Positions 10,801 to 50,523 of a DNA stretch of 64,000 bases are shown piece by piece. The stretch is from Oculina patagonica (Eukaryota). The DNA is taken from assembly GCF_052425735.1 (NCBI RefSeq), contig NC_135761.1:63364001-63428000 (forward strand). The letters are read 5' to 3'. Below the pieces are notes generated by a model, which was not told the DNA's origin, made no database searches, and worked only from the letters and a program-made list of their open reading frames with translations. The translations under genes were made by a program, and so were the position numbers. Every line of letters starts with the position of its first letter. Positions within the stretch are counted from its first letter, which is position 1.

Positions 10801-13800
10801 GAAATCCGGACGAGAAACATTTTTTTTCTTTTACTTGGCCTTAGAGCGTCTTTCTGGCTCGTGCTTAATATCAACGAAAAAAACTCGCCTGTTAGCCTGG
10901 GGGAAGTACTAATATTTACAAAACGTGTCTTTCAGAAAGTAAAAAAATCGGATTGTTTTCTAACAATATTTAACTCGCGTGTGTTGTACTTCCTTGATGA
11001 GGAATATTAAAGGAAGGAATCGAATTTCATACTTCTGTCATAACAACAGGAAGTTGTACCTGGTAACAAAATTTTCTTGTGTTGGCAAACCCACAGTAGT
11101 TACAACGGTCTCTCACAAGTTGTACTTATTACTGATATATTTGACTGCAAATTCCTGGCGGTTTGAGATTCAGCAAATTTTACTCTGGGACGGATCAGTT
11201 TTTCCCTGTCAGCTTTAGCGTTTATTGGCAAAAATACCGACCTCTTTGTCGACGATCACAGTACGTAAATAGTGGGCGTGATTGTTTTCTTCGAAAAACT
11301 AGAGACTATTCTGCGCACAGACAGGTATGATTGACCCTGAATATCATGCAATTAATTTAGTGTTAGTTTCTATTCCATGAGCCCATGGATATGGTCTAGA
11401 AAAATGTCAAAAGTCTAGAAATATATGTAAGTACAGTCTAGAAAAATGTCAAAAGCAAAATCCACTGTCACAATCAGGCCCGAACAAAATTTCGCGTATT
11501 CCTGTCGAAAAAATTCACCACTGATCTGAATTTAGTAAATTGGTATTCATATATTGTGGCGTCATCTTTGCGCTTGTCACGCGTTCGTGGGAAAGGCGAG
11601 ATCACGTGACGAGCGCAAAAGAGCGTAGGACGCTCGGGGTGGGGGACCGTGGGGGACAAGAGGACTAGAGCCCGGGGAGAAAGGCGGCAGGAAAAGGGAA
11701 AAGGGAGGGCTAGAGGGGGGTTGTAAGGTGGGGAAACAGGAAAAATTTTTTTGAAAAATATAAAAGGGGGGGGGGGAGGGGGGGGGGGGGGAGGGGGGGG
11801 GCCCCCCCCCCCCCCCCCTTTAAAAAAAAGGTCTTCCAGGCCAAGTTTGAAATAAAAGCCGGGAGGAAATACCGTAGATACTGTGGCTAATTACAAGGTC
11901 ACAATCATCTATGTTTAGTATGATTTCCGGGAAGCATTAAACGGAAATCTTTCTGGTCTAAATCACAGGGCAACCATACAACTCACCCTTGGGGGGAGGG
12001 CTTGTACAGCATTTGGCCCAGTAGCTATACTTAGAGTCGGGTCAGATTGGATAAATCCCAATTATTCTGACCGGTACTTTAAGTAGGCAATAAATTCTAA
12101 AATCTAAGATCCAAGACTAAGATGACACAGAAACCTTCCATGACGTCAGTCTTCTCATATTCCCGGCTCAACCCAGGCCCCTGGTGACCGCAGTGATTTC
12201 CCTGCACTGATATAATGTCTGGGCTTATCCGTATGTAAGTTCCCTGTTCTCACAAACTCATTTAATTTTCCATCAAAGATTGCGGGCCAAGCATAAAGCC
12301 ACAGAAACCGGCTGCGAGCCAAGAACACGGATAGGATCTCGTGCAAGGTAATATTTAGCAGTGTTAGCAAATTTCAAAATTTGTAACAATATGTTCGATC
12401 TGTTATAACGGCTGATCCAAACCGTTGTATTCATGAACTTTTGTCTCAACTGAATAATATAGCCGGCTGCCGGCTAATTAATATTACTTCTCTCTACTTG
12501 TTCGTTGCCTTACAATAATAGCCACTGGGTGACTGTCGCTTTTTAGTGTAAGGCTAGATATTTTCACACCGAATAAGACAATTTTCATTTGCTTTTATAG
12601 CTTGATTTGTTTCGTGCTTGCCTTAGCGCACTTCATTATTATCGGTTGACGATCTGCAAGGATAATACGCTGGTCATTGCTGAAAGGAAACCACCAGCAG
12701 TATGTATTAAAGCGCGCAGCTAATTTAGTGGGCTGGGCGCTAGAAGGCGAGGAACCATGTTTTCAGAAACATTCGTAGCGTGTGCATGTTTCCCAGTTTT
12801 GCCACACAGGAAGCATTCCATTGTTTTCAGCGTTATTTCTTTATCACCAAGAAGAAAAATTTCTTTCTGTTACACAGCAAAAACAATCCGTGTTTCCGCA
12901 CGGCATGAAACCATGGCAAAATGAGGAAACAATTATGGAAACATGTTTCCTCGTTTTGCCGGGCGCGGTTATATTTTCAACTTTGCGCTTAAAGTATAAA
13001 CGCTCATTTCACGTTGAAACTTCTTGTCGAATACAGTTCAGTTGAGAATTTTTTCGTTTTAAATCTGACTCGACTGTTGCTATTTTTAAACGAATAGTGA
13101 GTATATTAAAAATCGCTCACTTCGTCTACTGTTTCGGCTACTGTATCGATGAATGTGGAGAGTGTCTGGGCTGCTTTAGTAAGGTCCACCAAAGCAACGC
13201 CAAGAAAATCAATTTACTCCAGCCGGCCTGAACAAAACTTTAGGAGCTGAGCAGAATTTTAACATATCATGACCTTGCAATTCCTTTGTCAAACGCCGGT
13301 TCCCTTTTCAGGGGATCATTTCCGACTGGTTCATTTTTCGGGTCAACTCACCCAACTAATTTGGGTTAGATTTGCAGTTGTAAAGTTATGTAAAGCTATA
13401 AAATACAAGTTCATACCTACAAACGTAATAACAATTCTATTTTGATAAGTTTGTTAAAGAAAGTATTGACAACGAACTTTTCATATCCAGGTATTTAAAA
13501 TAGCCTGCGTGATTTCCAGGTGGACAGTATATTGCGCCGGTGTCGTTTTAAATAGCTTAGGTACTTGAAATTTGCTTTCTCTGGCATTGGTTTGTTATTT
13601 TACATAATTTTGAACATTGTTCCATCACAGTTTTGTTTATTTTTATAATTTAAGCCTCGCACTTTCCAGCGTTTTGACATTATTGTTTAAAATATTGATG
13701 CTGTTCATGCATAAGAAGGGCGTGAAACCGACACTCAAGCCATTTCTTGACAGCACAAAAATTCCGCAAAGAGCAATGAAAAATATGCCTTACAGTAATT

Positions 13801-16800: not shown

Positions 16801-19800
16801 GTTACCCTTAGTAAGACATATATATTTTTCAGACACCTCCGTATCATATATATCCGGCCTTAATTAATTCATGAGATCGTTTCTATCGCTATGTTTTAGA
16901 CCCCGGTAAGTGTTTATCATTTTAGTGCCAGTTAGAACGTGAAATTGACATTTGCATTTGCGTCAAATGACAATTTCACGTTGATTTATTACACATTTGC
17001 GGAAAAAAAGCAAGTGCCTCGATTAAGCCTAAGGCTTGGTAAGCTTGTTCACTAGGCACGGAATCACAACAAAAAGAGGACCGAATCGGCCGAAACCTGG
17101 AATACTGGAAAATATTTTTAAAAAAATTCTCAATGTCAAAGACGAGAAAATGATTTGTTTGCATCTAAACAAACGTCCATACGCGTAAGCACTGCGAGCC
17201 GTTCTCGTAGCTTTTCCCGCCTCACCGATTGCATGTTTTCTTCTCCTGGTCTTTTGCCTTGTCAATCAAGTAAGATTTTGCAAAATTAAAGTTGCCAACT
17301 TCAACTTTATATCGCCCACCGTACCATTTCTGCGTTACCAAAAAAGAAAGCCCTAAGCTGCTTTGCGTGTAGTGTAGAAGAGTGACTCCAACTATACAAG
17401 ACTAATACTATGGAAGCACGCGTCCTGAACACCAAGGGTTTCTTCAGTCTTCTGAAAATTTCGCTCTTCTTCTCTAGCCCCTTATACAAAATACTTTTCA
17501 TCAAGAGCTCAAAATGTGTCCACAATGAATGATATGACTTGACACGAACACGAACAATTACAGTGGTTTAATGTTGTAGAACTGTACTCGACAATTAGTA
17601 ACTAATTACGATAAGAATGATCTAAGTGGATTAAAATGCCAGAGCATCATATATGTTCATATGGAAAAAGCAATACTGAACGTGATAATTTGACGAGAAT
17701 TCCTTTATTTGAGTACCCATAGAGCATGTCTATGTTCACAGGAACATGCATGTGTAAAGTTCGACAAACGATGAGAGAAATCTTCATTCCAGGCCAGCTT
17801 TACATTAACTAGCGACTTTGATGACACGCTTCTGCTTGTAGATATAAATTGTTTTTCCTCTATAGAACAGTTCATATGTTTCCTTTTCATGTCGTACCAT
17901 CTAAGAAGAGAATCTGAACGTTTAGAGAACGTACAAAATTGATTATATAGGAGTCATGTAACGATAATGAAGGCATTGTTGGCGTTGCAAAAGATGGCTT
18001 TCAGATCAAAGTATTAACCTATGATCAAAGTTAAACAATGATATACTGAGGCATAGGAAAATTATAAGCTGAAAAGGAAACAAGGATGATTGACATTCAA
18101 GAGGATTAGGATGGATTATGAACACTGGACTTGAAAAATTTAGGCTTCAGTTTTCAAGAGAGTGCCTGTCGTGACGTATCGTCCTCAAGCAGACGAGGAG
18201 AAGAGAAGAGTCGATAAGTGCATGAAACAAAATATGCTTACTTTTGTGTAGTTATTCAATTAATACGGTTGAATAGCTGGTGACAGAGTTCCATTGACGA
18301 CAAAGAACAAAGTAGGTTTGTGTTTTCCAATCTGTGGAGGTGCGGTTCATTAATCTGGTTAGCTCAAGAAGAGTAGAGATTCTTTGAGTTGCTTATACAA
18401 AGCAGGGCTACTTTTCTATCACAGTGTCTCCAAACGGCCAGCGGAGCTTCATCCGATATATTGGAGTAATACGGGTCATGTGTCTGCTAAAGGTAATGGT
18501 TTTTGAGCAGCTTTAGTTTGTTCGTGACTCGAATTTTTAATGCCTTTAGTGTGGAACAAGGCACCTCTTTTCAAGTATCTTATGGGTTTTTTTTTTTGCA
18601 TCCCGTGTCCATTGCATGCAAAAGGTTAACAAACTTAGGCATCTTTTGTTCAAGCACAGTATAGGTGTTTGGGAGAGCCTTGAGGGAGGGTTCTCAAATT
18701 TGTGAGCCAACGCCAAACCGACGAAACACAGCAGCAGCTAACGAGCAACCTGTAGTGAACTTTGCACTTGCCGGGAATTTGTAAGGGGAGTGGGGAGGGA
18801 GCGGGAAGGAATGCCTCACATCAGCTTTGTTGGTATGAGCTGCCCAAAAGGTCATATATTTTGCTTCTTTTGCCTGAAACAAGTTTAACAGTCAGTCTTT
18901 TACACTAGGTATAAGGCATCTAGTGAGCCGCTTGACTGCAACATTTAACTTCCAAATAAAACTGGGAAAGAAATTGAAAAGCGCTTTTGTCAGATCCAAT
19001 AAGTTTTCTTGGTTACTTCAATGGGCGAGTGTTTGAATTTGAGCCCATCCGGATTGTCATTACCACGAGCACTTTATAGACAACTTTTTTCCTGTTTTTC
19101 TTTCTGTGCGGCATACACTCTGCTGAAGAGANNNNNNNNNNNNNNNNNNNNNNNNNNNNNNNNNNNNNNNNNNNNNNNNNNNNNNNNNNNNNNNNNNNNN
19201 NNNNNNNNNNNNNNNNNNNNNNNNNNNNNNNNNNNNNNNNNNNNNNNNNNNNNNNNNNNNNNNNNNNNGGATCGAACGGGGGTAAAAACCAACTTCAGGC
19301 CTGAAATTAAATATTGTGGTCTCAGTTTGCTACATTCTTGGACAATTGAAATAAAAATTAAAACCACCCCCTCCCCCATTTTAATGACAGGAAATATTAC
19401 GCGTTTTGGTTTTAGCGCGAATTCATCAGTAAATCGGGGGAAGAGGAGAGGTTCATTTCTCTTTTTATTCGTCCAAGATTGAAGGATAAGGGTTTCAAGA
19501 ACAGGATCTAGGAAGGAGCACCCCTGCCACAATTTTAATTTGTACTCCTCCCCCCCGCCCCCTGGGAAAATTAGCATAATATGCCCTGACTCAAGGCACT
19601 CGTAAACGGACTTTGGAATTACTTCACTTTAGAACATACCACTTTTGGTGTTTTGTTACATAACACATGTTACATAACAACGCACGTGAAGACACTTGTT
19701 AGCCATGGTTATATTTGATTGACATGCCTAATAACCGTATAAAAACAAAACGAGTGTAGAACATTTGAAAATCAGCGTCTGAACATGTAAGCCTTAAACA

Positions 19801-24900: not shown

Positions 24901-27900
24901 TGGAATTCTCCGTTAAGCTCCTTTCAGCAAGGACAGCTAGTTAAGGAGAGACAGACTTACTCAGTTGCATGGATGGTTTAAGTGAAGACAATGAAATTCC
25001 TTTATCTAATTTTAAACTGACAAAATAACTGCTGAGAAAAGTATGTTTAACAAACTCAGTCCCACACAGAGCGTCAATATTTACTGCCAACGAAATATGT
25101 CCAGCGTCGAAAGAATGTAAACCATGCATTCTCTCTTTACTCTCAAAACACTTGTAGCGGAAGGCGGAAGGAAGACAGAGCTATTGAAGTGTATACATAC
25201 TAGATCAGTGAGGGAAAGGTGATCAGTGAGGGAAAGGTGAACTGAAAAAATATTAAACTAAGCTTAAAAGCTTTGAGGCTACACAAACAACATATCGATA
25301 ACATTTGATTCCGTTCCCCTGTATGTGCACTTAAATGGCTGTTTACGATCATTTTCTAATATATTTGTTCTGGTGAAAGTATTTCATAAAAAAAATTCAT
25401 AGTCGAGTGTCTCTTTTGCTAATCCGGGCGCCATGTGTAAAGGCGCAAATTCTGTGATGATGGTGTACAATCGGATTATTGATTTTGAGGGCTCGGCTTT
25501 AGACCTTCATGTACGACAGAGAAGTTGAGGTACTTCTCTTGAAAAAGACACTGTCAAGGACACTCGTGTCCCCTCAAAGAACTAGTCTCCCGGCTACACC
25601 AGTTCTGATTGCGTGGGGGAGGGGAGGGCAGGGGGTGGACGTGGATAAGTATAGAGTAAATAAGTACTTCTAATTTTTAGATCTAGAGGGATCTTTTATG
25701 CATGCATCATTTATGATCTTTTATGTTTTTCATATATCATGTCCAGCTGCTAAAAGAACTCCAGAAATATGAAAATGTTCTTTTGCTTATATCTTCGTTA
25801 AAGTTTTCTTCAGTCTGTGCTTCCTCTATTTCATTACCCCTGCGTCTACGAATACCCCCCCCCCCCCATATTAGAAGAGGATACCTTCCCAAACGGACCA
25901 ACAGAGTCCACATAATTACGCTTAATCACGTCTCTTCAACTAAGAAATAAAACTCGGTAAATGTATGTTTTATACTGTCTGAAAAACGTTTTTCCTCATA
26001 ACTTAATCGAGGTATAAAATTATCTCTCCTTTTTTGGAACTTTTCTCAAAGAAAGATCTGGATCATGGTTATGGTCTTTTAAAAAGTGGAAAAATGTAAA
26101 ACGTGCTGTATTGGCCCATTTGGGAATAATGATAGTTATATAATCCTAGCACGAGTGACGTCCATGACTTATCTGCATGGTAGGTCGAGAAATTGTAGCT
26201 TTCTTAAGCTTTTGGAAGTAAAAATATCCGACCGGAAGGATATTAGCAGTTGACCCTTAACATTTCTCACCGATGGAACGTGCAGAGCAATCAAAAGATG
26301 GAATTTTAACAGTTAACAGTCTAAAAATACTGTTAAATTGCCTGACTAAAAGCTGATGTCCATATGATGCCCAGACTCGCTGATGGTTCACGGTGATTTG
26401 AATATTTTACTTGAGTGCGAGTTATATCTTTCAAGGTCGGCTAGGGTGTTTAGATATACAGCATACAGGGGGAATTTAAATTGGGTAGACAGTATTTTAA
26501 GCTAAAATTGGGCCTTCAATGAGTATAAAGTAAACTGTTTTTTTTCCAGGTTTTTTCTATGTTTTTGGTATTTTGCATGATTTTGAGCGAAAATTTTGGG
26601 TATACCGGTAACATGTTTTTCAGGAACATTGGTATACTATTTACCTTCCGGCCGACCTTGATCTTTCTCAGTGAGTCGCTTTTCAACTCTCAGGAGTTGG
26701 GAGGGGGGTATGGTACACCTGAACGACGGGGTAGTGCCGATAAATTTTGTGGTTTGTTTGCATTCTGTTTTTTGTTTTGTTTTTTTGCTTGGAGGGGAGG
26801 GGAGGGGTGTACAATTTTGCCGAATTCGTATTCTTCAGAGAGAAAAAATTCCGTTACTAGTTATTCCGTGTGTCTATTCCTGCCAGAAAAAGTACCCCCT
26901 GTCCGGGGGGACTCCTCATTGATGTTTAACAAAAAAGCGTGCAAAGCAGAACGTTTTCCGAAGCTCGGCAATTAAATAAATTTAGATAAAGAGGTCGGAG
27001 AAAATTCTAGTCAGACATTTATATCCAATCTCAAAGGATTAGTAGACCTCAGATTTTTAATTAGATGTCTCGTTAAAAGGGTCAGGAAAGAGAACTAGAT
27101 AAATTTTGACAAGTCGGCACAGATTCTCCGTGTCTTTTTATTACATATACCTGAAGTTGTTAAGATTACTAGGCACGTGTACACGAAACATACGGGGTAT
27201 GCCAACTTCGTTATATCTACTTTGTACTTTGTACTTTAAACAAACATACATCCACTGACTAAAAGAGCGTTTTCGTTCTGTAAAGAGCTAAAAGAAACAA
27301 GTTAGTAAAAAAAGATTAAAGCGAGTCGGATACACTCCAGTGTCACCAATGTATCTCCAAGGCTAATCTTGACAAGGATTCGTTTGTTTTCCACTAATCG
27401 TAAATCACCCAGCTTAGTATTNNNNNNNNNNNNNNNNNNNNNNNNNNNNNNNNNNNNNNNNNNNNNNNNNNNNNNNNNNNNNNNNNNNNNNNNNNNNNNN
27501 NNNNNNNNNNNNNNNNNNNNNNNNNNNNNNNNNNNNNNNNNNNNNNNNNNNNNNNNNNNNNNNNNNNNNNNNNNNNNNNNNNNNNNNNNNNNNNNNNNNN
27601 NNNNNNNNNNNNNNNNNNNNNNNNNNNNNNNNNNNNNNNNNNNNNNNNNNNNNNNNNNNNNNNNNNNNNNNNNNNNNNNNNNNNNNNNNNNNNNNNNNNN
27701 NNNNNNNNNNNNNNNNNNNNNNNNNNNNNNNNNNNNNNNNNNNNNNNNNNNNNNNNNNNNNNNNNNNNNNNNNNNNNNNNNNNNNNNNNNNNNNNNNNNN
27801 NNNNNNNNNNNNNNNNNNNNNNNNNNNNNNNNNNNNNNNNNNNNNNNNNNNNNNNNNNNNNNNNNNNNNNNNNNNNNNNNNNNNNNNNNNNNNNNNNNNN

Positions 27901-27987
27901 NNNNNNNNNNNNNNNNNNNNNCAAAGAATGTCAAGAATGTTTGATGATAGCGCTGTTTCGGGTCAAGGGGTCATTGCAGACTTTGAT

Positions 27988-28699
27988 ATTTAATTTTCAT
28001 TTCATGCACACATGCCATATACACGTTGTAGAATTTACTGCAACAAGAGCAAGTAAAACATTTTCTAGCGAAATTAGAATTGCTCATTCGAATTTCACGT
28101 GGCTGGTAATTGATGCATTGCAACTCAAGACAACCAGAGACAACTTAATCGATAACACTAGATTTTAAAACACATAATAATATATTTTAAGCATACCTTT
28201 TTCATACGCTGTTTGCTTTGGAGAAGAGCGGCGAGAACTGTTTATGTTGATGGTGTACCATATTAATCGATGGGTTAATGTGTCGTCTTCATAGGTCCAC
28301 AAAACGCAAAAGTAGATTTCGCGCCATGGCTTGATATTTGGCGGGGAGTTAACTTGCCGCATTTCCCGCGCGTAAACATTATCCTTGGCTGCTGATTTTT
28401 TGTGGTTGTTTGGAGATTATCTTCCTTTAATGTTTGCAGTGAGAATACTTGCTTTCATCCTTGTTTCCATTATTCTTTCATTGAAGTAAATTATACTCCC
28501 TGCCCCGCCACAGACTGCACTGCATGTTAATTTTGACCAAATGATCTTGCACATCACCTCGTGATCTTTATTTGCACGGTTTCGCAATACACTGCTATTA
28601 ATTTGTAACAGAATGAAACGTGTACGGGCAAACGAGGAAATTAGATACAGAAAAAGCCAATGAAAACAAATTGGTGTATCGTCACCACCAATCAACGAT
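27988..28699 (+). repeat. Left long terminal inverted repeat (at least 712 bp; probably extends outward through 27922 into the gap)
   Basis: Reverse complement of 49227-49938 with about 5 mismatches seen by eye. The same spurious ORFs appear on opposite strands (28165-28362 vs 49564-49761). Degenerate similarity continues inward to about 28750. Confidence 0.95.
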
Positions 28700-28734
28700 A
28701 GACACATGTTACAAGCAGATTCACGGCATCTTTC

Positions 28735-29574
28735 ATGATTGCAGAACACGTAATCACGTTACTTTTGTTATCGTTTTTAAGCAAAGTTTATTTCTTTGCG
28801 ACTAGAAAAGAAAAACTGGGTATTATGTATTCAACTGAATCTTTTAAAGAAGAATCATCAGAGACTGGTAGCAATCACCTTTTCGATGAAATAGTGTTTG
28901 AGAGCGACAATGAAGAGTCACAACCGCATACCATGTTGCCACTGTTACATTCATCGACACTGCCTAAAGCGTATGACAATGTTGAGGTTGTGTTTGAAAG
29001 CGACGAAGAAGATTTCGAAGCAGATAACGTATTGCCTTTTTTGGAAACTGCAACACTTCTCAATGCTGTGTATAATGATGCAGCAGCAGCTACGGTTGTC
29101 AGTCCAAAACTTCCGCCTATCACCCTGGAAACTATCATTCCACCAGTGAGCCGCCAAGATATGAAGCGCATCTTCGTGGTAGAAACAATCAAGCAAGGCT
29201 CGCACAATTTCATCGAATTAAATGTTGGGTGCGGTTATTCCTCTTGCAAGGTTACTACCATAATTAACACTTCTGACAGTTATGGAATTTACTGGTGTCC
29301 TTTTCCAAAATGTAACATGAAGTCTAGGAAGCGATGGCTTTTAAGTGATCATTTGAGGAAAACCCATCACGGTCCATTTTACTGTGGGCAATGTGGCACT
29401 TTCTACTGTCACTTGTCTTCATTAGATCGCCATTTACGGCAAAGTGGGCATTTGCGTTTTACTCATTGTTTGAAAAATGAGGAACCTGGCTGTCATACTA
29501 CTGCAGCGATAAAACGGTTCTCTGCCGATATGTGTAAAGTTTTTTCAACTGCCCCAGGCTACATTATCCTATAG
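28735..29574 (+). CDS. C2H2 zinc-finger protein with duplicated acidic SIM-like segments (transposon cargo)
   Basis: 279-aa ORF (alternative start M31 at 28825). Fingers: CPFPKC-x12-HLRKTH and CGQC-x12-HLRQSGH. A 32-aa tandem repeat carries EIVFESDNEE / VEVVFESDEED. Confidence 0.75.
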   Translation: MIAEHVITLLLLSFLSKVYFFATRKEKLGIMYSTESFKEESSETGSNHLFDEIVFESDNEESQPHTMLPLLHSSTLPKAYDNVEVVFESDEEDFEADNVLPFLETATLLNAVYNDAAAATVVSPKLPPITLETIIPPVSRQDMKRIFVVETIKQGSHNFIELNVGCGYSSCKVTTIINTSDSYGIYWCPFPKCNMKSRKRWLLSDHLRKTHHGPFYCGQCGTFYCHLSSLDRHLRQSGHLRFTHCLKNEEPGCHTTAAIKRFSADMCKVFSTAPGYIIL

Positions 29575-30878: not shown

Positions 30879-33800
30879 TCACTCCTTGTACTCCAAAATT
30901 TCATGTGCGATTTCGTACCGCAGGTGGTCCACATTTTCCTGGAAAAGGCAAAAAAAATATTTTGTATGCGATTTACTACTGTTATGCACTTAGTGAGAAG
31001 TACATACCTCTTATTAATCGCGTTTGAGGGTTTGTATTTTAAAATACGGACCGAGTTTTTTTCTGTCTATTTATAGCGCAAGCGCGAAGCACATGTTCTC
31101 AAAAAGCCAATTTGGGTACTATGCTTATTACTAATGCGTTTCGTTTTTCTGGCAATGTATTTCCGTAAAAAAAAAATTAAGAAACCTCAAAATGGGGAAA
31201 CTTGTGCTAATCCATTCAAATAACTCACTGACCTGAGTAAAGTTTGGCTGTACTCCCTCCGCTAAGCATTTTGCTGTCTGTGAAAAAAATGTTGTAGAGA
31301 ACCGAATCTGAGAACACTGATATAAAAGATAAAACTTAAAAGTTTCATTTTAGCTACGTGCAAAGGCGGTTACTAGTGAAATACACTATATATAGCTTTT
31401 GGGACAGTGAAGAAGTGATTTAATGAAGTTTTTGGGCCATCATTGCTAGCGTTTTGATTGTTTCTTCAATTCAGTCAGGTTTCTATTTTTTTAAAAAAGT
31501 GTTTCATCCATATTCTTGAATGCGTTTTGCCATTCCATGTATTGCATTAGCATATAGTCTACTGAAACGCAAAATCTTTTTTCCATATTTTTTTTAAAAA
31601 AGATAATAATTATTATCAAACCTCTATCACAAACACTCCACAACTGGTATCGTCGAGTTGTTCCGGTCCTTTCATAACGGTGTCTTCCCAACGATCTAAT
31701 TGGGAAAATCCCTGAGCAGTCAAAAATTTCCTACAGAAAAAAAAAATGACGATTTTTCTGGAAAACAATATTTGCACTTTACATTCATATTTAGAAAGCA
31801 GAAAAACACATAATCCAGAGATTAATTCCGTATATCGATACTGATGTGAGTTCTAGAAATATTAATGCATGAGACAAACCTAATATTTTTGAAAACTGAC
31901 TGCTTTGGACCGCTCTGCTTACTGTCGTAAAACACAATCGCTTGTTTGATTCTGTCGGCAACCTATAGGAATTAAAAAATTTCAGGCTCTTAGTTCACAG
32001 TTAACCCAAAAGTAACTTGAAAAATCTGGCTAGATAAAAGACGGATCATATAATAACTAATGACCATGGATTCTAAGTACGTTGTCGGTTAACAGTCATC
32101 TGTATGCACTACCATAGTTTACAGATTAGTTTGCACCTACCGCAAGCACCCAATGAACTCCTTGTATATTGATTGGGAAGAGCAAAATCTGACTTGTGTT
32201 TAGACGGTCCTGTTGATCGAATTTGTTGTTAATACTGTTTCGTTAGATTACAGGAATGAGAGGTAAGGTGGGAAATAGTTTTCCATTGTGGCAACTCTAT
32301 GAGTAATTAGCAAATTTTAACATAACAGATTTGCGGTGCTCTTCTTGGATGAACTGTTGCTGTATTTGTTCATTAGGCAAGCATTTTTAGTTTTCATACA
32401 GTTGAGCGAAAGCGAACTACAGTGTAGGCGTAAAAGTGACACGCATCTTTTGGGATTTTTTTCCCGCTTTCACTCAGTAAGAGACCAGATGTGAACTAAA
32501 CTAACGCTTGATGCACTATTCGTCAGAAGGACGCTGGGCCAAGAGGTAAAACGTGAAAAGATATTAAATGAGGCGTGGCTGAAAGTAACATTTACCTGGT
32601 CAAACCATTTATCTAATTTAAGGGTACGGACGTCGCTTTTCAAACTGTTCAGTTTTGCGTAGAAGAAACTGGTGAACGACATCAGCCTTTTTCCCTGAAA
32701 TGAAATTCGCATAAATAATACACGGTCAAGCTGGATTCCTTGCATGAAATAAGTTTTAACGCAAAAAAAGACTTAATTGTCACCTTTCTGTTGCCCCGTT
32801 CCTCAATGATTTTGAAGGAAGCGTCTATTATCTAAGGAAATAATAACGGATTGTCAGTAGTTATGTTTAAGATCCGCAAATTTACTGTAATATATTTACC
32901 TCCATTTTTACTTATAAAAGCCCACAGTGTGATAAGTACAATGAAACTGCCTTCTTGTCTGTGCCAGGTGGGGGGGGGGGGGGGGTGGGGGTGGGGTAAG
33001 GGTTAGTTTTGTGAAAGAGTGACATAGCGGTGCCAGGCAACTAACCTTAAATTGGCAATGTTCTTTGTTAATCGACATGTTTTGACCTTGACCGTACGCA
33101 ACTAACACATTAGAAACGTCTATGTTTGGTAATTCATAGATAGCGATTTTTAATGCAGAACAAAAGATTAAACCACGCTAAAGAGAAAGGAAAAAGCGGT
33201 AATAACGGCCACCAGTGTGAATTGTACTTATTAAAAGAATCCCGATGATTCCCCAAAAATCAAAATTTTTCTGTTATTGAATGTAAACACGGAAGTATTT
33301 TTATTCCACGTCACTGAGATATTTGTCAATTACGTGATAAACTGAGTGAGAAATCCGCCTGAAATTACAAAAAGATTTCGGCCACCTAAAACATGTAAAA
33401 TCCGCCCATGTTGGCATGCATTAATATCGAATAATTTCCGAGAAACACTTAGTTTTATGTTTTCAGCAGCAACTTGATTCACAAATGATTTTCACCCGGC
33501 CTGTGCCTGGCACCACTATGTCTTCAAAGAAAAAAAAAAAAAGTGCAGACTTTCTTCCACGCCCTTGTGAGTTCTGCTAGTTTACTCCCATGTTTATAAC
33601 GGGGCGTGGTTCCGTGTACATCTTTCCCTTTTGTTCTCTTTATCGTACCTGATCGTTTAGCCATCCATCAATAAATGGCTTGGACATTTCGCGATTTAAT
33701 AGCAATTTGTCCTCATCTGTCACGGATGGCTGCACTGTCTTCAAATCTTTCAGAGTTATCGTAATATCTCTGATTTTCCTGATTTTTGTAGACAGACACT

Positions 33801-36800
33801 TGTTGTGAATTTCCCATGCTGATTCAACCTAAAGTTTTGTAAGAACAATGATCAGGAAAAATTAATTCCCATTGTTAGTGCTGTATATGCAGAATTTTAA
33901 GGAAATCTATCTGCATGAACTCACCTTTCTTCGCTTTCTATATGTTTTAAGGACCTCCCCATAATGGGCCCTTATGAGAGGAAGATTGTTTACGCGGTAG
34001 CCGGTCTTTCCTTGAAGGCTTACTTCAATTTTTCGCCTGAAGATGTCGTTGGCGGTTACCGTTTCGTCCGACCTCTTTTTAAAATCGAAGACCTCGCCAG
34101 GTTTTTGTTCGAGGTAGGCGACACGAACATTGTCTCCTTCTACACCCATTACTTTGGCAATGTAGAATTTGACAATGTGGAATATTGCCACCCACTCGTT
34201 TACTTCAGGTATGGAATGTTTCTGCAACAATAAAGAAATCACCTTTGGTTTTCAAATTAATTTGGATGCAAATAGAGACGTTGCATTTCACATGATGGTA
34301 TTGCTGATTGTTTGTCATAAAGACAACCAGGTAAATGTTGAACAGCATATAAAGCATATAATCTTGGTATTGTTGGTATTACCTTCTTAGTTTCAGTCTT
34401 TTTGGCATCCTGTATCGGAGGATCCACTACATTTGATTCCCCTGTCGGAAAACCCTCTACATATGAATCCTCTGCCAGAGGATCCATTGCATTTGATTCC
34501 CCTGTCGGAAAATCGTCTACATATGAATTCTCTGTCAGAGAATCCTCTGAATGTGGTTCCTCTTTGGAAGAATCTAGGTGCAGTGGATCCTCTTCCACAA
34601 TTTCTATCTTCTCCTCTCCTATTTCAGGTTCGTCTTTTTCTTCATTTGTTGGAATTGCCTACAGAATGTCGAGAATATGTAAATTTTTAATCGAGAAGAG
34701 TTAAATTCATTTTTAAGATGGCAAAAAAAATTTAATTTTTAATTTTTAACGGCAAAATTATGTTGTCATAAGTACCATTCTACGTCGTTTTTTCTTGGGC
34801 CCTACTGTAACATTATCAGGGCCGGCTTCCTTAATTTCATTGTTATCCTGTAAGAGCAATTGCAAAAATTGTCAAATAAGTTTTAAGTTTACAAATAACT
34901 GCTTCAGGTCATTTATATATTGCAAAAGTATTGTTGCCAACAAACATTGCTCAAAGGATCTATAACGCTCTCCACCGGATAAATCGCTGTGTAGATGTAA
35001 ACAAAGCCAACTACTCTTTTAACTATGGAATGCTTTTGCGTGTTATACAATGGCATATTGTAGGTCACAAATTACAATTCCTCCTTAATTTTCTGAAATT
35101 TGGTGTACTTACTTCGGGCATGTAATCCACTAGTGATGAAACATCCTCTAACAGGAGGTTAAACTTTGGTTTTACCTGTATGGATAAGAAACGAAATGGT
35201 GTTTTTTGAGGCTTTCAAGGTTATATGATTGTCAACTGGTTATTTGCAATTTGCCAAACACAAAATCTTGTCTGCTGTCCAGACTTCCTAGCCAGTTTTC
35301 CTTTTCGAAAAATAAAGAAAAAATGCTTCCTTCGTGGAAACTGTTTCTTGGCTAGTGGCTACTTATAATTTTCGTGCGTGTTTACTGATAAAAAATTTCT
35401 TATTGGACTTGGACAGTATCACGACCTCTTGCTAACATACGTTTAAGCAACAGCTATGTCGTAATAATCAATAGAGGCTATGATATTAATTACTTCGATA
35501 TTAGTTGCATCCGCCACAATCTGTCCCTCCTTCCTTCTTTGGGTTGTTTTCACCTGTACAAAATAAACAAACCGCAACATCGATACTGACTCAGAGAGAC
35601 CCTTGAGAGTTACGACCAATTTTGAAACGCGTACAGGTTCGTCCTCGTTCTGACTCGAATCTGAACGGAAGACATGAATTAGACTTCACAAGTTTGTATC
35701 GCATAATTTCTGAATGTCTTTAGCTAGGGCTGTAGCCAGGCTTTGATATATACGAGGCAAACGTTGCGAGCGCCGAATGCGCGAGCCGCAGGTGGGGTTA
35801 TGGGAAATTCTGAAATCGTGAAGCACTGAAACGCTATGAGGTATTTCTATAGAAAGAAATCATGAGGAATTTCTACAGAAAAAACGATCTCATTTATCTG
35901 GGAATTATTTTTGGCCTCTTGCAAGTTACGGCCCTGATTTAACAAATGCTAAGTCTGATAGATTGCATCCTGGTAGAGTGTTATTTGTATTTAATTTTCT
36001 AACTGATTACTGGTGCCGGGAAGCAAAACGCAAATGAAATTATTCCCTAATTTTGCGAGTATACCATTTGGTTACCTTTTATAATCGTTGCATGTATGTA
36101 ATTGAATACGCTCTTACCGGACGTACCTTTACTTTTTCTTTGCCCGTGATGCTTCCCTGACCGTGTTTGCTGCTTGCTTCCTTAGCCTTGATGGAACATT
36201 ACAAGAAGCACAGTAAATATATCACATGTTTGCGCTGCAGTACATTTACTCAGCAGATACAACTGACAAGGAAGCAAACTGGAACACTCGCTATTCTTTG
36301 TCTGATCAATCTACATTCATGATTGTACCCTAAACATAACAAATGTTAAAACAATAAAGCAAACTAGAGGCTTTTGCATGGCTACTTTATGCGTTAGTCG
36401 TAAGTTATCGGAAAGGAAGATTTTTTTAAAAAAATGGCAGCACCCGTCTTGGGCAACTACAATCGCTTGGTTACCTCATCAAGCGTACAGCTTTCCTCCA
36501 ATAACGGTTCTTTTAGTGACGCAATGGTTGTTTGGAGTTTTTCAATTCTCTATGACATAAAAAGACAACATTTTCCGAATTATGATTCGTCATCGAAAAT
36601 TTACACTACCGTAATTATTCGATTTAGCGCCCTCCTTCCAATAAGCGCCCCCTTCCGAATAAGCGCCCCCCTTCGAATGTGTTTTTGTAAATAAGCGCCC
36701 CTATTCCAATAAGCGCCCCCATTCTAATTAGCTCCCCCATTCTTATAAGCACCCCTATTCTAATAAGCGCCCCTATTGCAGATAACTGCCCCTACTGAAG

Positions 36801-39471
36801 TCATTGACGTCAACTAGATAAGCTCCTGACCGTTCACCATACAGTTCATGTATATATATTTCTACTAAAATGAACAACTATTTTAAAAGTAACAAAACTT
36901 TTAACAATTTCTTACTGTTACAGTTCCTTTTATTGTTAGATACATTTGGTTGTTTCTCAAAAAATTGAATAAGCGCCCTGTCCCGAATAAGCGCCCTGTC
37001 TCGAATAAGCGCCATCCCTTGAGGTACCAAAAGGAAATAAGCGCCCCGGGCGCTAAATAACTTAGTTGTGATTAGAAAATTTCGTGTATTAAATAGATTA
37101 AATAGTTCGCAAGTTATTTAACTTCACTGAGCCTTTAAACAGTTGCTGTGGTAAAAAGAGAAACTGGGAGTCTTTCGATATGGTCAATAAGTCATTTGCA
37201 GAACATGATTACGCGCTTGGTTAACACCTAGCTTTGGGTCGCTTGGTAGCAAACCATCCACGTGTGACGTCAGATAACAGCAGTTTGAGTGAGAGCGAGC
37301 GTGGCCATTCAAACGTTTTACAAGTTTTCTAGACCAGCCACTCCGAAAAATCTCCAACAACGTATCAATCATAAACATCATCGGGGCCCAACTGAAGTGA
37401 GCGTTCGTTTGATTGTGATATCGATGCAACTTGGTTCGAAAGTGAGGGGAGTCAAAGTAAAAAAAAAAACGTAACTAAAGCATTGGAGTAAGGAAACGAA
37501 ATGCATAACAACCCTCTTTGGGAGTACAGTGGTTCGACGTAGAAAAAGGTCTGTCCGTTACCTTGTCATAAAATTCTCGTAGGTCTTTCTCTCTGGAACG
37601 AAGCTCCTCCACAAAGTCTTGAATGCCTCGATTCTCCTGCAATAACTTAGACAAAAGGCAACACGGAATTAGCAACTGTTCTTTAGTACAAAATTGTATT
37701 TTGGTTTAAATCACTTTCGCTGCTGGGGTCGTAAAACTCAACCTTCTCAATATTTCAATATCGATTACATAATTGAGAAAAAACAAAGGTGTTACAGATA
37801 TAACTGTTAGCAAAAAATTAAAATTTAAACACATCTAAAAAGTACTGAGTGAATTTATACTGCTTTTATGTTGTTGGAAGGTTCTTTACAATCAGGCGCG
37901 CATTGGTCTGATGCACAATTTAAGGGCCACCTACAATTCTTTGATTCCTTTAAATTTGAAACCAAATCAAGGTCCTTTACATTTATCAATAAAGATAAAG
38001 AAATTGCTTTACTGCCTCCGAGTTGCCCAATTTTACAGTTAGAGCTGCATGATAAAACTCACTTACAGTTTGAATTCTTGTTCGAAGTCCAGCACTTGTT
38101 CTTTTTTCGTCTTCCAACTGCCCTTTGAGCTCGTTGATTTCCGTTCGCTGATTTGAAATCGAGTAAGAAATTATTTCACTTAATTTTACCTGGCCAGAAC
38201 TGGTAAGGACAATTCCGGGACATCAAACATGAATATTATAAATAATAATAACTTAATTCTTCATAATTTTATTCAAATGATAATAATGCAATGTACAGTA
38301 GATTTTGTCACATACCAATACTGCTACATCCTCTTCTTGGAGGTCAGCTTCATCTTGAGATGATTCGAGCGCTTCCTCAAGTTGTTCATTCTGATCTTTC
38401 TTCGCCTTGCCCTTAAAAGCAAACAGAAGCGCATGTCAGCAATGACTGATAGCCCCGCTCCATAAAACCGTAACATATGTACACTCTTTTTTATATAAGA
38501 ACGTCTAATTTTCGGGCAGACTCTGAGCGTCTCTTTTTTTTCGATTTGAGGATGAAAATGTTTTTAAGACATTCTTAAGTTACCTTATTTTGGTCTACGA
38601 ACGGAGATTTTCTACACATTGTATCATGCAAGAAGCAAAAAAAACATTGTTAAAGTATTTCCTAGTTTTCAGCATTGAGTAGCTGTGCCGTTAAACCACA
38701 GTTTTGCATTTATTTATACTGCTCATTTTGATAAATTAAAACAAATGGGCAAATTAAAATTTGGGTAAGTCTCAACCTCAACATTCTTATAAAAAAATGG
38801 TTCTTGTAAAAAAAAAATAGTGTTTATGAAGCTATTTTAACAGAGGTTTAGCATGGTTTCTGTTGGACAACAACTGTGAAATGAATAAAATGAGAAAAAT
38901 AGCTCACCGTCTTTGCCGTGTTAAGTTCTGTCAACTTCTTTTCGCCTCCTTCAATCACTTTTTGTAGAAGGTCATAAGCTTCCTCTTCAGGACACGACTG
39001 TTTCAGGAACTTAAATGTGTAGCTCGAGATTTTATGGCTTCTGCAATACTTAGCAGGATTGTTTGCTATTTGTGTCACCAAGGCAAAACATCGCCGACTA
39101 AGCCTAGCTATTTGCTGAATCTTCTTTAAGTCCTAAGTTAAAGTCAAAATTACACTGTAATTTCATGCAGAAATAAACAAATTAATCAATCAAGACAAAA
39201 ACTAATATTAAAAGGCAGAGGCGGTTTTAAAACTCACTTTTGGACCCAAGTGTCTCTCTATAAAAGCTGCCAAACGCTTGTCCAGATCTCTGTTTACACC
39301 ACGTCGAGGTAAATCGTACCTTTCAGGTGTCAGTGATAGGAAGCGGTACATCGTTTCTCGTAGAATATTTACCGTCGGCCAAAAATCTGGTGGTTGATAT
39401 GGTGTGCTTTCGGCAACTACTCTTCCAGCGGTACTGGTTGATGGAGCGATTGGAATAAAAAACTTGTTCAT
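30879..39471 (-). CDS. Ulp1/SENP-family (peptidase C48, clan CE) cysteine protease with coiled-coil, NLS and Tudor-like region, ~743 aa
   Basis: Minus-strand GT-AG exons: 39471-39238, 39132-38908, 38411-38316, 38147-38067, 37636-37562, 36186-36127, 35553-35494, 35175-35113, 34847-34776, 34658-34383, 34221-33925, 33828-33649, 32831-32784, 32694-32596, 32209-32141, 31962-31880, 31730-31622, 31277-31233, 30938-30879. The catalytic domain reads ITLKDLKTV...GWLNDQIIDA...SFTSFFYAKL...KWF...LLFPINIQGVHWVLA...IVFYDS...PEQLDDTSCGVFVIE...FTQENVDHLRYEIAHEIL. The N-terminal exon set is less certain (an acceptor also lies at 39493-39494, and extra small exons are possible). Confidence 0.85.
36607..37060. 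mobile_element. MITE fragment with AATAAGCGCCC subterminal arrays, in a protease intron
   Basis: Starts TACCGTAATTATTCGATTTAGCGCCC and contains many AATAAGCGCCC copies. Inverted GGGCGCTAAAT at 37048-37058. Confidence 0.7.
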
Positions 39472-39879
39472 TTTTCGTTTTTCGCTGCTGTTCTGTCACA
39501 CAGAAATACTGATCACCCTTCGTAATATTTAATCGATTGAAATGGAGGTAAAGTTATCTTATCTATTACGAAATTAAATCAGGAAATGCGACGTTTATCC
39601 TTCAAAGGTTGGGTAACTTGAAAGACTCCACTCGAGCCATGGATAGAATTTGGTAGAATGAACCGAAAGAGACTTTTCTGACCATAAACCCGGGTGCGGG
39701 AAATTGTTTTACCTTTATTTTTCTTCTTACAACAATCTGAATTTTCGTGTTTCTTTTCAATAAAATTTGAAAATGTGACATGGTAGCATTGGGCAACAAC
39801 ATATTCATCCAAACGTATGACGTGAAAGGTTGACTGCGTTACACAACCTAGTATGTATTTCATGCAATTTGTCTCGCCC

Positions 39880-41924: not shown

Positions 41925-42230
41925 TAACTTCCGGAAAATTGTGATTGGACGAGTCAAGATCTTATTTACTGTTGTAGCCCCAAGTATTTAGACACGCGTC
42001 ACACGATTTTGGCGGGAACGTCACGAAATACAGATAAGCACAAACAACACTCTGGGAAAACAATAGTTATTATCTAGCTAGGGTACCATTGGCGGAATCA
42101 GGAACTAATGTACTTCACTTTCCATTAACACAAAGAGGATACGAAATGGCGGGAAAGTCAACTTTATACGACCCTTTGTAAGTGACAGCATGGTCACTTT
42201 GTAGCAGACATCGACGCTCTCGCTTCGAAC
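41925..42230. promoter_or_regulatory. Putative bidirectional promoter between the protease and transposase genes, with E2F-like sites
   Basis: TTTGGCGGGAA at 42008-42018, TGGCGGGAAA at 42147-42156, TTGGCGGAA at 42089-42097, plus ACTTCCGGAA (ETS-like) and GATTGG (CCAAT) near 41927-41948. It lies between divergently oriented genes. Confidence 0.45.
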
Positions 42231-45200
42231 ATGGCGATCAACAAACTCTGGAAGATAGATATACTCTTGGGCTGTTTTGTATTGTTGATTGTACTTATAG
42301 CACTTCGCTTCACTTCAAAACTGGCAATCGATAACCCGCCAGAAAACAATTCTTACAATAGAAGTGAGGAGACCCGACAAACCTTTTCCGGAGACGATCT
42401 TCGCACACGTAGTGAACACGGTAAACAAGATGGTCCAGGAGGCGACGATTTCCGCCCGAGATTTCCATTTTTTTACTGGGAAACCTGGGATTTTCCTGTG
42501 CTTACAACACTGGACATTCTGGGAGAGGAACTGCGAGCTATTGCTCGTCAAGCTGCCAAATCGCCATCGATTGCAAGTAAACAAGACCTGGAGGAAAACG
42601 ATATCGTTCTTTCGTCTGCAGCCGGGACAGTTGTAGGCGACCAGGTACATAGTTAAATTTCAATTTTTCTACAGTAGTAGTAGTAGTGGTAGTGGTAGTG
42701 GTAGTGGTAGTAGAAAGTAGTAAACTTTATTTAAGTGTCAATCGTTCTAGCGTTTTACACACTAATTGGTGACACTAATTACAAACTAAGATAAACATTA
42801 AAATTTTGAGAAAATTGAAACCCTTATTCTAAATAAAACTCTAGTTAAAAACATGTTTAAAAAACATACACTTATTCTAAATAAAACTCTAGTTACAAAC
42901 GTACTTAAAAAAACATACACTAATTACATAATTACGATCACTTTCTAAATTAACTATTGCATAAATAACAGTTCTTGCATCTCCCGTCTTCAATAAAGTG
43001 CGTTGAACACGATTTGACTTTGTTGTTCTGGTTACAGCCACAAGTGTTACGACTACGTGGAGGAGCAAGAGGTAGCAAGAACGTAAGTTATTTTTATCAC
43101 CTGCTCCCTTTGTAGTACATTTGTCTTCTTGTACCCAAAATTAAAAGTTTCCCTCGTAAAAACCTTTTACATTTCTACAAGTCTTCACTAACATTTCTGG
43201 GGACATCCGTGAAAAGCAATTCAATCATTGTATAACATTTCATAGCAACGATAGACTGCGATAAAGAAAGAGGAAAAGATGCTCCTGAGGAGCATGGTTA
43301 CTAACGATCTTTTTTCTTACCAGAGTGAAACGTCTGACGTAAAATGTGGTTGCGGTGGGGCATGCAATCATGGCATTGATGATGATTATGATGTAGAAAT
43401 TGAGGTCAGTCAGTGTATTGTAATCATTTAGTACAATTTAAACAGTTACGATGTTTAAGGTGTATATTCATGACCTGATGGGGTTGAAATGACACAACAA
43501 CAATAAATTATTGAACGTATGTGATACAAAGGGTCTCTATACAAAAGACAGCTCCGTGGTTTGGTCTATTGACCCTTTCTAAGAATGCTTATCATAACCT
43601 TACATTGACTTAAAAATTAAAGTTAGAAATAACGCGTGCGTAGCATTGCAGAAAAAAAAAAAAGGAAAAAGCCTGATGATTGTCTTTTGAATTATCTAAA
43701 TGTGCCTGTTTTTCGTTTTTTCAGGAAGATTGGAGAGATGATATAAAGGAACCTGCTTGCTTTGGATTGGATGGAAGTTTCGATGAAGATCGAAGGGTGA
43801 GTCTTTTCATAGTCACTTTAAGGGTGCTCTATTTCATTGATACTCAAATAATATTTGATCTATTTCTCCCTTCATATATTCTTAATTATACACTAAAATA
43901 TGCAGGCCGCTTCGCGGCATTGGTTCAATTGGAATTAATCTTACTGACTGACAACAATCAAGTTGGCAGACAACAGTTACTTTTGGGTCAAGCATGTCTT
44001 GGGCTTCCCGGGGGCACACTTTGAGGAGGCTTCGCCGGTGGTCAGAAGCTAATAGCCAGATTAGGACACCACAACGCACTATCAAAGTTTCACCGATTTA
44101 ACGAGATGCACAAGAATGCAGTCCATTTCGAATGTAGTGTCAGACTGAACGTTCTCCTTCTTAACATATTCAACATATCATGCTATGTCAAACTAAGGCT
44201 AAAAGATTTTTATGCTTCTTGTTTTTTCTCAGGATATAGTGAATGATTTTCCTTCTCCTGAATGCGATGTAGACAACACGATGGGCAAAGCAAAGCAAAC
44301 AGAAAAGCACCCTGTTGCGAAGAAGCAACCTGAAATAGCCAAGAGGCACAAGACAAAAGAAAATATGAAGAAAAGCAAAGTCAATTACGCCAAAGTGGAA
44401 AAAGAAGTGAAATTGGGTAACTGCTGCCACAAAAAATGTATACGAAGAAAACTTTCAATATCAGACGTTTATGAAACAAGACAAATGTTCTTCGACAAGT
44501 CACAGGAACAGCAAAGAGCCTATCTAATTAACTTCTTTCAGATTAGTCAGAGATCGAAAAACGGAAGAACGGTGTACGCCCACTATGTAAACGGCAAAGA
44601 AGTATGTCAGAAGGCCTGGATATTTAGCCATGGAATGGCATATGGGAGGTACGCTATATTTTTTTCTTTAGAATACAAACGTAACATAAGGAGGAGACAG
44701 GCTAGCAGGCTTACTTGCGCTAATGATAACTAACATTAATTTTTCTAACGTAGCTCTGTCCTCAGGGATAACTTTCCTTTTAACATCATTTTATATATAC
44801 TATGGTTGCTTGCTATGTTGTGTTTTAACAGATACCATAATTGGAAGCGCGAGGTTGAGAAAAAAGGCACAACACAAAGCTATCACTGTCGCGAAGGAAT
44901 GGTCTACAAATCCAAACGCACACTGGAAGCGGAACTTTGGTTTGACGAATTCGTGTCTACTTTTGCCAACATAATGCCTGACGTCAATAGGAGGGAACTA
45001 CCTTCGTGTATGACTATTTGCCAAATTCACAAAATGTATCGTGAGGCAATTAAACGTGCACCCTTAAGCTTAGCGCAGTTCAGACGAATGTGGAAACAGA
45101 ACTTCAAGGATGTAATTATACCTAAGGTAAGATGATGTAATGATAAAATAGAAATTGATTTTTTTAGTCGACGTTGTCGTCAGCGTCGCTGCATGTAAAG

Positions 45201-48200: not shown

Positions 48201-48663
48201 CCGTACATCCAATTCACAAATTTCTTTCGTCTTGTAAGGCTCACACCTAATAAAATCACGCTGGCAACGACACCCCCTCCCCCCCCCCCCCCACACACAC
48301 ACACACACCTCCCTGCACATCGGTAGAAAAACGTGAAAGATGAATTCTTCATTAGCAACCACACCTGACTGACCTAACTCAGTTGTTAAGTTATACCCAG
48401 GATAGATAAACAGATGAACCAAGTTATATGCTTTTGTGTAACTCCTTTCAGTTTTTGTAAAAAGTCTCATAAGGTAAATGAATTGTGATGCACAGGTGCA
48501 GATGACAAAGAAAGCGGTTGGCGGCAAGGACAAGGACCGAGGAACAAAGAGGAAACGTGCAGAAAAAACGTGTGAGAAGAAAACAAAAGGAAAAGGAGAA
48601 AACATTGAGAAAAAACGTGTGAAAAGAAAACAAAAGGAAAAGGCACCAAAAAATAAACAGTAA
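42231..48663 (+). CDS. Spliced DDD-type DNA transposase (Sola1-like/DUF7869-type), ~900 aa, with an N-terminal hydrophobic anchor and LRLRGG motif
   Basis: GT-AG exons 42231-42644, 43038-43082, 43324-43404, 43725-43796, 44233-44648, 44832-45126, 45571-45692, 45885-46014, 46189-46350, 46736-46852, 46933-46983, 47532-48161 and 48496-48663 total 2703 nt in one frame. Motifs: CCHKKC...VCQKAW, FSKCGVC, KYMSIIIDGMDQAK, HVTGTLSHGHG, LYLQLDNCYRDCKN, SYLVVGHTHEDIDQMFS, and a basic tail. AATAAA at 48669-48674. The core (exons 5-12) is secure; joining exons 1-4 to it is a prediction. Confidence 0.85.
42673..42722 (+). repeat. (GTA/GTG)n microsatellite in transposase intron 1
   Basis: gtagtagtagtagtggtagtggtagtggtagtggtagtag. 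Confidence 0.85.
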
Positions 48664-49226
48664 ATTGTAATAAAGTAAAAAAAAAATGCAATCATTTAAC
48701 AAGACGAAAATACCTATATTTGACTTATAAAATACCACGTTAAGAGCACTGACAGCACCAGAGGCTCTTTTCTTTTCGCGACGATTTGAAGGGGAAGGAG
48801 GGGGTGGGCTTCATGTAAAGGGGCAAAAATAATGCCGCACAAAGCAATACATCTGACACCTAGTGAGGTCGAGGAATATGAAAAAAATATTAGGATACAT
48901 CAATTATTATACTAACTACTATATTCTTTGACTGTTAAACAAGTCTTCGAATATTTGTAGGCATTAACATTCAAAATCGCGAAGTTAGACCAGCAACATT
49001 TACACCTTTCAAACGGTTTTCCTGTTACTTTTTCAAGTACCGCGAAAGATGTACAAACCATTTTCACGATATCCTAGTTGCGATACGACAATCTCAAATA
49101 TGGGGTAATTAAGAATACATTATCATAAAATAATCCCTCATGAAAAAAAGCAGGTGCGGCGAATATCCTCGCCTTCGCGTACTGCAATGTCATGAACAGT
49201 GAGACATTTCAATGTAATATGTATCG

Positions 49227-49938
49227 ATCGTTGATTGGTGGTGACGATACACCAATTTGTTTTCATTGGCTTTTTCTGTATCTAATTTCCTCGTTTGCCC
49301 GTACACGTTTCATTCTGTTACAAATTAATAGCAGTGTATTGCGAAACCGTGCAAATAAAGATCACGAGGTGATGTGCAAGATCATTTGGTCAAAATTAAC
49401 ATGCAGTGCAGTCTGTGGCGGGGCAGGGAGTATTATTTACTTCAATGAAAGAATAATGGAAACAAGGATGAAAGCAAGTATTCTCACTGCAAACATTAAA
49501 GGAAGATAATCTCCAAACAACCACAAAAAATCAGCAGCCAAGGATAATGTTTACGCGCGGGAAATGCGGCAAGTTAACTCCCCGCCAAATATCAAGCCAT
49601 GGCGCGAAATCTACTTTTGCGTTTTGTGGACCTATGAAGACGACACATTAACCCATCGATTAATATGGTACACCATCAACATAAACAGTTCTCGCCGCTC
49701 TCCTCCAAAGCAAACAACGTATGAAAAAGGTATGCTTAAAATATATTATTATGTGTTTTAAAATCTAGTGTTATCGATTATGTTGTCTCTGGTTGTCTTG
49801 AGTTGCAATGCATCAATTACCAGCCACGTGAAATTCGAATGAGCAATGCTAATTTCGCTAGAAAATGTTTTACTTGCTCTTGTTGCAGTAAATTCTACAA
49901 CGTGTATATGGCATGTGTGCATGAAATGAAAATTAAAT
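49227..49938 (-). repeat. Right long terminal inverted repeat
   Basis: Reverse complement of 27988-28699; ends at the gap that begins at 49939. Confidence 0.95.
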
Positions 49939-50445: not shown

Positions 50446-50523
50446 TTGGGAGAACACAAGAAAAGCTTGTAAATCACGAGCCGTCAGGCGAGTGATTTAC
50501 AAGCTTTTCCAGTGTTCTCCCAA
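50446..50523. repeat. Hairpin core of a palindromic dispersed repeat
   Basis: TTGGGAGAACAC..GAAAAGCTTGTAAATCAC ... GTGATTTACAAGCTTTTC..GTGTTCTCCCAA inverted arms. Confidence 0.8.

Follow-up and report, generated by a model that had tools for sequence, protein, structure and literature searches.

The 64,000-nt window analyzed here (positions 63,364,001 to 63,428,000 of NC_135761.1 in the Oculina patagonica assembly GCF_052425735.1) contains, between two assembly gaps, one copy of a large cut-and-paste DNA transposon with terminal inverted repeats (TIRs), which is nominally 23 kb long, is of the Sola kind, and encodes a transposase of the Pfam family DUF7869. The outer sides of both gaps are bordered by a 9-nt direct repeat, which was confirmed to be real and not a product of chance. 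To judge from one complete relative (n = 1) and the literature, a target site duplication (TSD) of 4 bp would be the norm of this lineage, as described for Sola. The explanation favored here, to which about an even chance is given, is that a Sola-type element with this 4-bp norm stands between 9-mers that come either from a hidden nested insertion or from the placement of a contig in the scaffold, the two sources being taken jointly.

Three N runs, at 19132–19268 (137 N), 27422–27921 (500 N), and 49939–50438 (500 N), divide the window into four contig pieces. The left flank contig terminates in ...CACCCAG-CTTAGTATT, with the 9-mer as its final bases (27413–27421) immediately before the left 500-N run, which covers the left junction and the outer left TIR. 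The right flank contig opens with CTTAGTATT-GGGAGAAC, with the 9-mer as its first bases (50439–50447) immediately after the right 500-N run, which covers the right junction and the outer right TIR. The initial annotation, which had reported this repeat at the outer edges of both gaps, was accurate on that point. CTTAGTATT occurs only these two times on both strands of the window, in which ~1.2 occurrences are expected from base composition. The chance that nine given end and start positions match is ~6e-6 by base composition, or ~7e-5 across the 12 end-to-start pairings, 11 of which have 0 bases in common while the twelfth has this 9-mer. The edges of the 137-N gap (19132–19268) showed no comparable repeat, so the assembly does not habitually place such repeats at its gaps. 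Each 9-mer borders on N at its inner side, which makes nine the minimum length of the repeat and hides its contact with the tips of the element.

The inner contig (27922–49938) is bounded by inverted repeats at 27988–28713 and 49213–49938, which are 726 nt long and 99% identical, with eight mismatches. Their pairing has a sharp stop on the inner side (inward of 28713), and the right gap truncates it at the outer end, so 726 nt is a minimum. The visible part of the left TIR arm (27922–28713, plus orientation) extends 66 nt (27922–27987) beyond the visible right arm (49213–49938, minus orientation), which ends at the gap. Within the 64-kb window, neither the TIR nor the flanks nor the DUF7869 gene has a second copy.

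The transposase gene lies on the plus strand at 44431–48323. Plus-strand frames at 45.8–48.3 kb match positions 4–53, 93–110, and 109–191 of the DUF7869 profile in succession, which indicates that the gene is spliced, and it was searched exon by exon. The exon blocks at approximately 44431–45126, 45574–45693, 45868–46038, 46186–46341, 46745–46855, 46933–46986, and 47529–48161(–48323) are collinear with the Porites homologue P0026 and cover its residues 1–574 in order. The cleanly bounded blocks have zero stops, so the gene appears to be intact. The first catalytic aspartate lies in the motif IIIDGMDQ (45868–46038), the second in LQLDNC (46745–46855), and the motif GHTHEDID in 46933–46986; the natural single-piece homologue P0020 from Montipora (410 amino acids, aa) contains the whole core and confirms the order of the exons in the window.

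P0020 was also used for the study of the family and its fold. A search with it returned 286 clusters from corals, anemones, hydrozoans, a sponge, bivalves, echinoderms, and amphioxus, labeled "uncharacterized" or "DUF7869 domain-containing" with the exception of P0107 from Mya arenaria ("OGG1-like protein"). A large, multi-copy, "uncharacterized" family has the pattern of a transposon-borne gene, and DUF7869 is apparently a Sola-like transposase that has gone unannotated. Across 35 aligned homologues (P0020 numbering), D157 never varies, with D31 and D115 conserved in at least 90%; the near-invariant motifs are D31 (IIDGMDQ), D115-N116 (LQxDNC...KN), and G150-H151-T152-H153-E154-D155-x-D157. 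The AlphaFold2 model built on the homologue alignment is confident (predicted local distance difference test score, pLDDT, 84; predicted template modeling score, pTM, 0.82) and has the RNase H-like topology beta1-beta2-beta3-alpha-beta4-alpha-beta5-alpha, with the catalytic residues in canonical positions: D31 at the end of beta1, D115 at the end of beta4, and the acidic cluster at the start of the next helix. A Foldseek search against PDB gave no strong match (best E ~4e-3 to 7e-3); the consistent matches were retroviral integrase catalytic cores (probability 0.96–0.99 over ~171 columns), and next came the IstA and TnsB transposases. No solved structure matching DUF7869 by sequence was found, nor any mention of DUF7869 in the literature searched. 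The family is, on these models, a predicted transposase of the DDE/DDD type (with an Asp-Asp-Glu or Asp-Asp-Asp triad) without a close solved relative.

Sola was originally defined by DDD transposases together with 4-bp TSDs. The superfamily and its Sola1 group (Bao et al., 2009, as cited in PMC3845634, PMC4455052, and PMC5751038) are represented by the reference cores Sola1-1_AP, Sola2-1_HM, and Sola3-1_HM, printed in the supplement of Majorek et al. (2014; PMC3985635). The window protein was compared with these printed cores motif by motif and unscored, which places membership at the level of motif and fold only. The strand of the first Asp reads AVFDLEKVLTTP in Sola1-1_AP and IIIDGMDQAKTYLP in the window protein, the region of the second Asp reads FYSDNCGGQNRN and LQLDNCYRDCKN, respectively, and the motif that follows is ERGHTQS in the former and VVGHTHEDID in the latter. 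The spacing from first to second Asp is ~77 residues in Sola1-1_AP and 84 in the window protein, and that from the second Asp to GHT is ~34 and 35, respectively. With Sola1, the element shares the RNase H-like core, three acidic residues, the "DxxxxxxxP" strand, "DNC....[KR]N", "GHT", and TIRs, and its relative M4, described below, has a 4-bp TSD. Sola2 (TDGCAGQYKN, SHG) and Sola3 ("DxxQKxxP", "SDN") have the same core layout and 4-bp TSDs and fit the window protein partially in their motifs, but lack the combination of "DNC" and "GHT" that is common to Sola1 and the window protein. Motif order and spacing line up with the Sola1 core, so the designation Sola-like holds at the level of motif and fold, and a transposase closest in motifs to Sola1 is supported at that level. 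No database entry for the DUF7869 relatives has a name that says Sola.

The element also differs from Sola1 in several respects. The coral-type elements are 17–23 kb long, compared with ~5 kb for Sola1 (mean of 5.4 kb in bivalves; PMC10294476), their TIRs measure ~1.9–2 kb, and they carry two or three extra conserved genes. Their tips begin with AACA..., in contrast to GGACCG... in insect Sola1, and their targets mostly do not fit AWWT, which has been called the hallmark TSD of Sola1 (PMC3845634). The copy in the window is, in addition, bordered by the 9-mer.

Two other superfamilies were considered and rejected. Mutator and Mutator-like elements (MULEs) share long TIRs with this element, and their TSDs of 9–11 bp would be compatible with a 9-bp flanking repeat. 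However, a Pfam scan of the element that took in ~27 open frames from both strands, but not every small frame, gave DUF7869 and sub-threshold noise only, with no MULE/Mutator transposase domain; the called genes in the relatives likewise contained no MULE-type transposase family, and the TSD of the relative M4 is 4 bp. The judgment of the initial annotation that the transposase is Sola-like and not Mutator-like agrees with DUF7869 as the only Pfam family, with the order and spacing of the Sola1 motifs, and with the three conserved aspartates in an RNase H-like fold. Polinton/Maverick elements are also large (15–20 kb), have long TIRs, and occur in marine invertebrates, but no polymerase B, rve integrase, capsid, or protease family was present in the ~27 frames, and their 6-bp TSD fits neither 4 nor 9.

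Relatives were searched for with the last exon and taken at ≤73% identity, and loci from coral-type assemblies were fetched and merged. These relatives are 17–23 kb long and collinear with the window element, having, from left to right, a frame of ~280–290 aa, a minus-strand multi-exon gene, a 156-aa frame, and the transposase. M1 (L008+L001) spans 22.7 kb and has TIRs that extend over at least 1,646 nt (98.4% identity); its contig begins ~63 nt short of the left tip. A second copy, L002, is 99.6% identical to L001, which indicates recent activity of that family; it starts mid-element, inside an internal tandem array (L001:3211-4332), and it sets the right end exactly, since homology to L001 ceases at ...GGGGATCTGTT. 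M4 (L004+L010) is complete at 16.8 kb, with 1.9-kb TIR arms that are 98.5% identical; it lacks most transposase exons and is, on that ground, a deletion derivative. The left end is missing from M5, a Gypsy element and a foreign TIR element break up M12, and no tip was seen in L003.

The terminal ~27 nt, AACA[G/C]A..CCAT.TAAAAATGTAC, recur in conserved form at nine right ends, which belong to at least eight families. A protein profile run against metagenome contigs gave 19 loci and four more right tips, every contig being too short for the left end. Searches for the tip motif in metagenome contigs, and for the tip motif and the protein in viral contigs, gave no match. A prokaryote genome collection gave a single match to the tip pattern, in a metagenome-assembled genome of a freshwater "Bacteroidetes" (L035:2169-2193, on a 98-kb contig), which was judged to be chance, with ~0.1 expected by our own estimate and no other similarity to the elements. 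Blasting of terminal 300-nt segments found no further ends among the loci examined, and no empty sites were found among them for M4 or for any of the flanks.

Several further features were observed in the relatives. In M5, an inverted repeat pair of 3.6 kb (88–92%; L009:11349-14918 and L005:16991-20540) brackets the transposase half and the right tip; this may reflect a rearrangement or another element present in two copies. One relative has a nested Gypsy-type retrotransposon with long terminal repeats (LTRs) at L013:3567-9843, with a gag of 496 aa, a pol of 1292 aa, and LTRs of 309 nt that are 99.7% identical; it lies within a further foreign element that has tandem-repeat-bearing inverted ends (L013:1322-2521 and 11289-13279). 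In HiFi metagenome assemblies, contigs likewise break at these elements, either ~63 nt inside the left tip or inside the tandem array.

M4 is the only complete relative in which a TSD could be read (n = 1). Both of its arms start with the identical tip, and the flanks read ...TCC-CTGT / element / CTGT-ATAC..., so that exactly 4 nt are duplicated, with a chance of 0.0057 for such a junction match. Within 60 nt of both ends, there is no common 7–10-mer and no 9-mer at ≤1 mismatch. The arms match fully over their first 200 nt and differ by just 1.5% overall, so decay after insertion could not have erased a 9-bp TSD. The length agrees with the 4-bp TSDs of described Sola elements, which the initial annotation had stated correctly (PMC3845634) and which have been described as consistent with Sola2 (PMC3627910). 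That annotation had taken the 9-mer as the sign of a distinct lineage or superfamily and had named 4-bp TSDs at other copies as the observation that would speak against this; such a TSD was found once, in M4, a member of the same lineage, and the claim is not supported.

In de Bruijn assembly of a heterozygous insertion, the left unitig ends at the last common base and the right one starts at the first, and the TSD, extended by any chance microhomology to the element tips, therefore forms the end of the one flank contig and the start of the other. This logic explains why the contigs of the window stop exactly at the repeat, and the site is probably heterozygous (polymorphic) for the insertion, a suggestion that had already been made in the initial annotation and that fits the contig ends. 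Both flank contigs would run up to and include the duplicated target, which by the same logic would be ~9 nt long here. The 9-mer would, in the explanation favored here, not be the canonical product of this Sola-type transposase. It may instead stem from a second inserted sequence with a 9-bp TSD, whose ends would be concealed in the gaps by nesting, or the 22-kb contig may have been scaffolded into a break that another polymorphic insertion had made. Nested insertions are common in the relatives, which bears on the former option. A 4-bp TSD extended by 5 nt of chance microhomology was rejected as a further source, with a probability of only ~0.3% (hand calculation), and it would be impossible if the hidden tips resemble the AACA...TGTT of the relatives.

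The stretch of TIR concealed in the gaps is probably longer than the nominal 500 nt. The distance from a fixed last-exon residue to the right tip is 2990–5456 nt in nine relatives, whereas in the window the contig ends 2142 nt from this residue, and, with the gap taken at its literal 500 nt, the right 9-mer would stand at 2643 nt. The shorter anchor distance in the window means that the gaps have room for sequence beyond the TIR. Next to the insertion site, a near-perfect hairpin of 78 nt (50446–50523; 37-nt arms, 89% complementary, 4-nt loop) starts 2 nt inside the right 9-mer, and more inverted repeats lie at 50891–50971 and 51056–51137; the site adjoins small sequences resembling foldback elements or MITEs (miniature transposable elements with inverted repeats).

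Several points weigh against the nested or scaffolding origin of the 9-mer. The 4-bp norm comes from a single complete relative and the literature, and the order of flank, gap, TIR, TIR, gap, and flank reads most simply as 9-mers abutting the element's own tips. Neither a second element nor an error of scaffolding can be seen, every other source proposed for the 9-mer is improbable when taken singly (a few in a hundred a priori by our own estimate), and the low figure for microhomology given above adds to these points.

The first alternative is an atypical integration of this copy, in which the family norm would be 4 bp and the 9-mers would abut the tips through a 9-nt staggered break or through capture at a staggered double-strand break with fill-in. 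It accounts for the scaffold geometry most parsimoniously, agrees with a 9-mer far above chance, and reconciles the window with M4. However, no example was found in this lineage, the junctions are hidden, and the geometry of the transpososome normally sets the length of the TSD, which is constant within superfamilies. This alternative is possible and is held only tentatively. The broader proposition that a Sola-type DDD transposase can make 9-bp besides 4-bp duplications, the 9-mer being the true product of this copy's integration, is considered unlikely. Whether or not it holds, the element belongs to an apparently undescribed coral/cnidarian clade of Sola-like transposons (17–23 kb, three to four genes, ~2-kb TIRs, and a conserved tip).

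The lineage might, as the initial annotation proposed, regularly make 9-bp TSDs and constitute a distinct lineage or superfamily; the CTGT of M4 would then be coincidental, for instance in a recombinant copy. Besides the 9-mer itself, the long TIRs and large size unlike those of described Sola1 would favor this, as would the right-flank 4-mers of the relatives, which together with the CTGT target of M4 are mostly a poor fit to the AWWT preference. It is opposed by M4, which has the same collinear organization and tip, arms that are 98.5% identical, exactly 4 nt repeated (p ~0.006), and no trace of a 9-mer, and by a catalytic core that fits the Sola motifs and the DDD triad; a regular 9-bp TSD is quite improbable. 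The 9-mer is weak evidence for a new transposon class, and a new superfamily is not supported. A coincidence, or a base-level assembly or scaffolding artifact without any insertion, is hardly credible, since, although about one occurrence of the 9-mer is expected per window and scaffold gap edges can bear artifactual duplications, the position-specific chance is very low, the other gap has no similar repeat, and overlaps of de Bruijn contigs would be k-1 and not 9 nt long.

Two or three accessory genes accompany the transposase and are conserved in position and sequence across families (31–59% aa identity). Gene A, just inside the left TIR (28702–29571, plus strand), is a single open frame of ~280–290 aa with a weak C2H2 zinc-finger signal and 37–38% identity to the frames at the same position in M1 and M4 (L008:17551-18393 and L010:12751-13614). 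Gene B is a multi-exon gene on the minus strand (31619–39495), of which the pieces 31619–31852, 33643–33828, 33910–34251, 37478–37705, 38851–39132, and 39211–39495 are conserved; it has no Pfam match. Upstream of the transposase gene, a conserved open frame of 156 aa (42186–42653, plus strand) is 31–33% identical to its counterparts in M1, M5, and M12.

The element also contains repeats of its own. Tandem arrays are found at 36626–37013 and at 34415–34545: an 18-nt array (AATAAGCGCCCC-type units, ~10 copies, two blocks) and a 30/60-nt array that sits in an acidic, proline-rich open frame of the minus strand. Long homopolymer-rich G and C tracts at 32968–32993 and 48270–48307 are inverted and 15 kb apart, probably a low-complexity coincidence.

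The length of the TSD reflects the geometry of the transpososome and is a main classification character of DNA transposons. A Sola-type enzyme making 9-bp duplications would, if true, be a real anomaly, which the present evidence does not establish. The element is a notable Sola variant, with four times the usual size of Sola1, kilobase TIRs, and conserved accessory genes, and a limited literature search found no prior description of such large multi-gene Sola-like elements. What is established, at the level of sequence comparison and a predicted fold, is that the "uncharacterized" DUF7869 family of marine invertebrates represents a putative Sola-like DDD transposase. In corals, DUF7869 rides on multi-gene elements of unusual size with TIRs in the kilobase range; these elements disrupt assemblies and probably remain polymorphic. 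These findings are relevant to the annotation of coral genomes, to the reading of contig breaks, and to the role of the conserved accessory genes.

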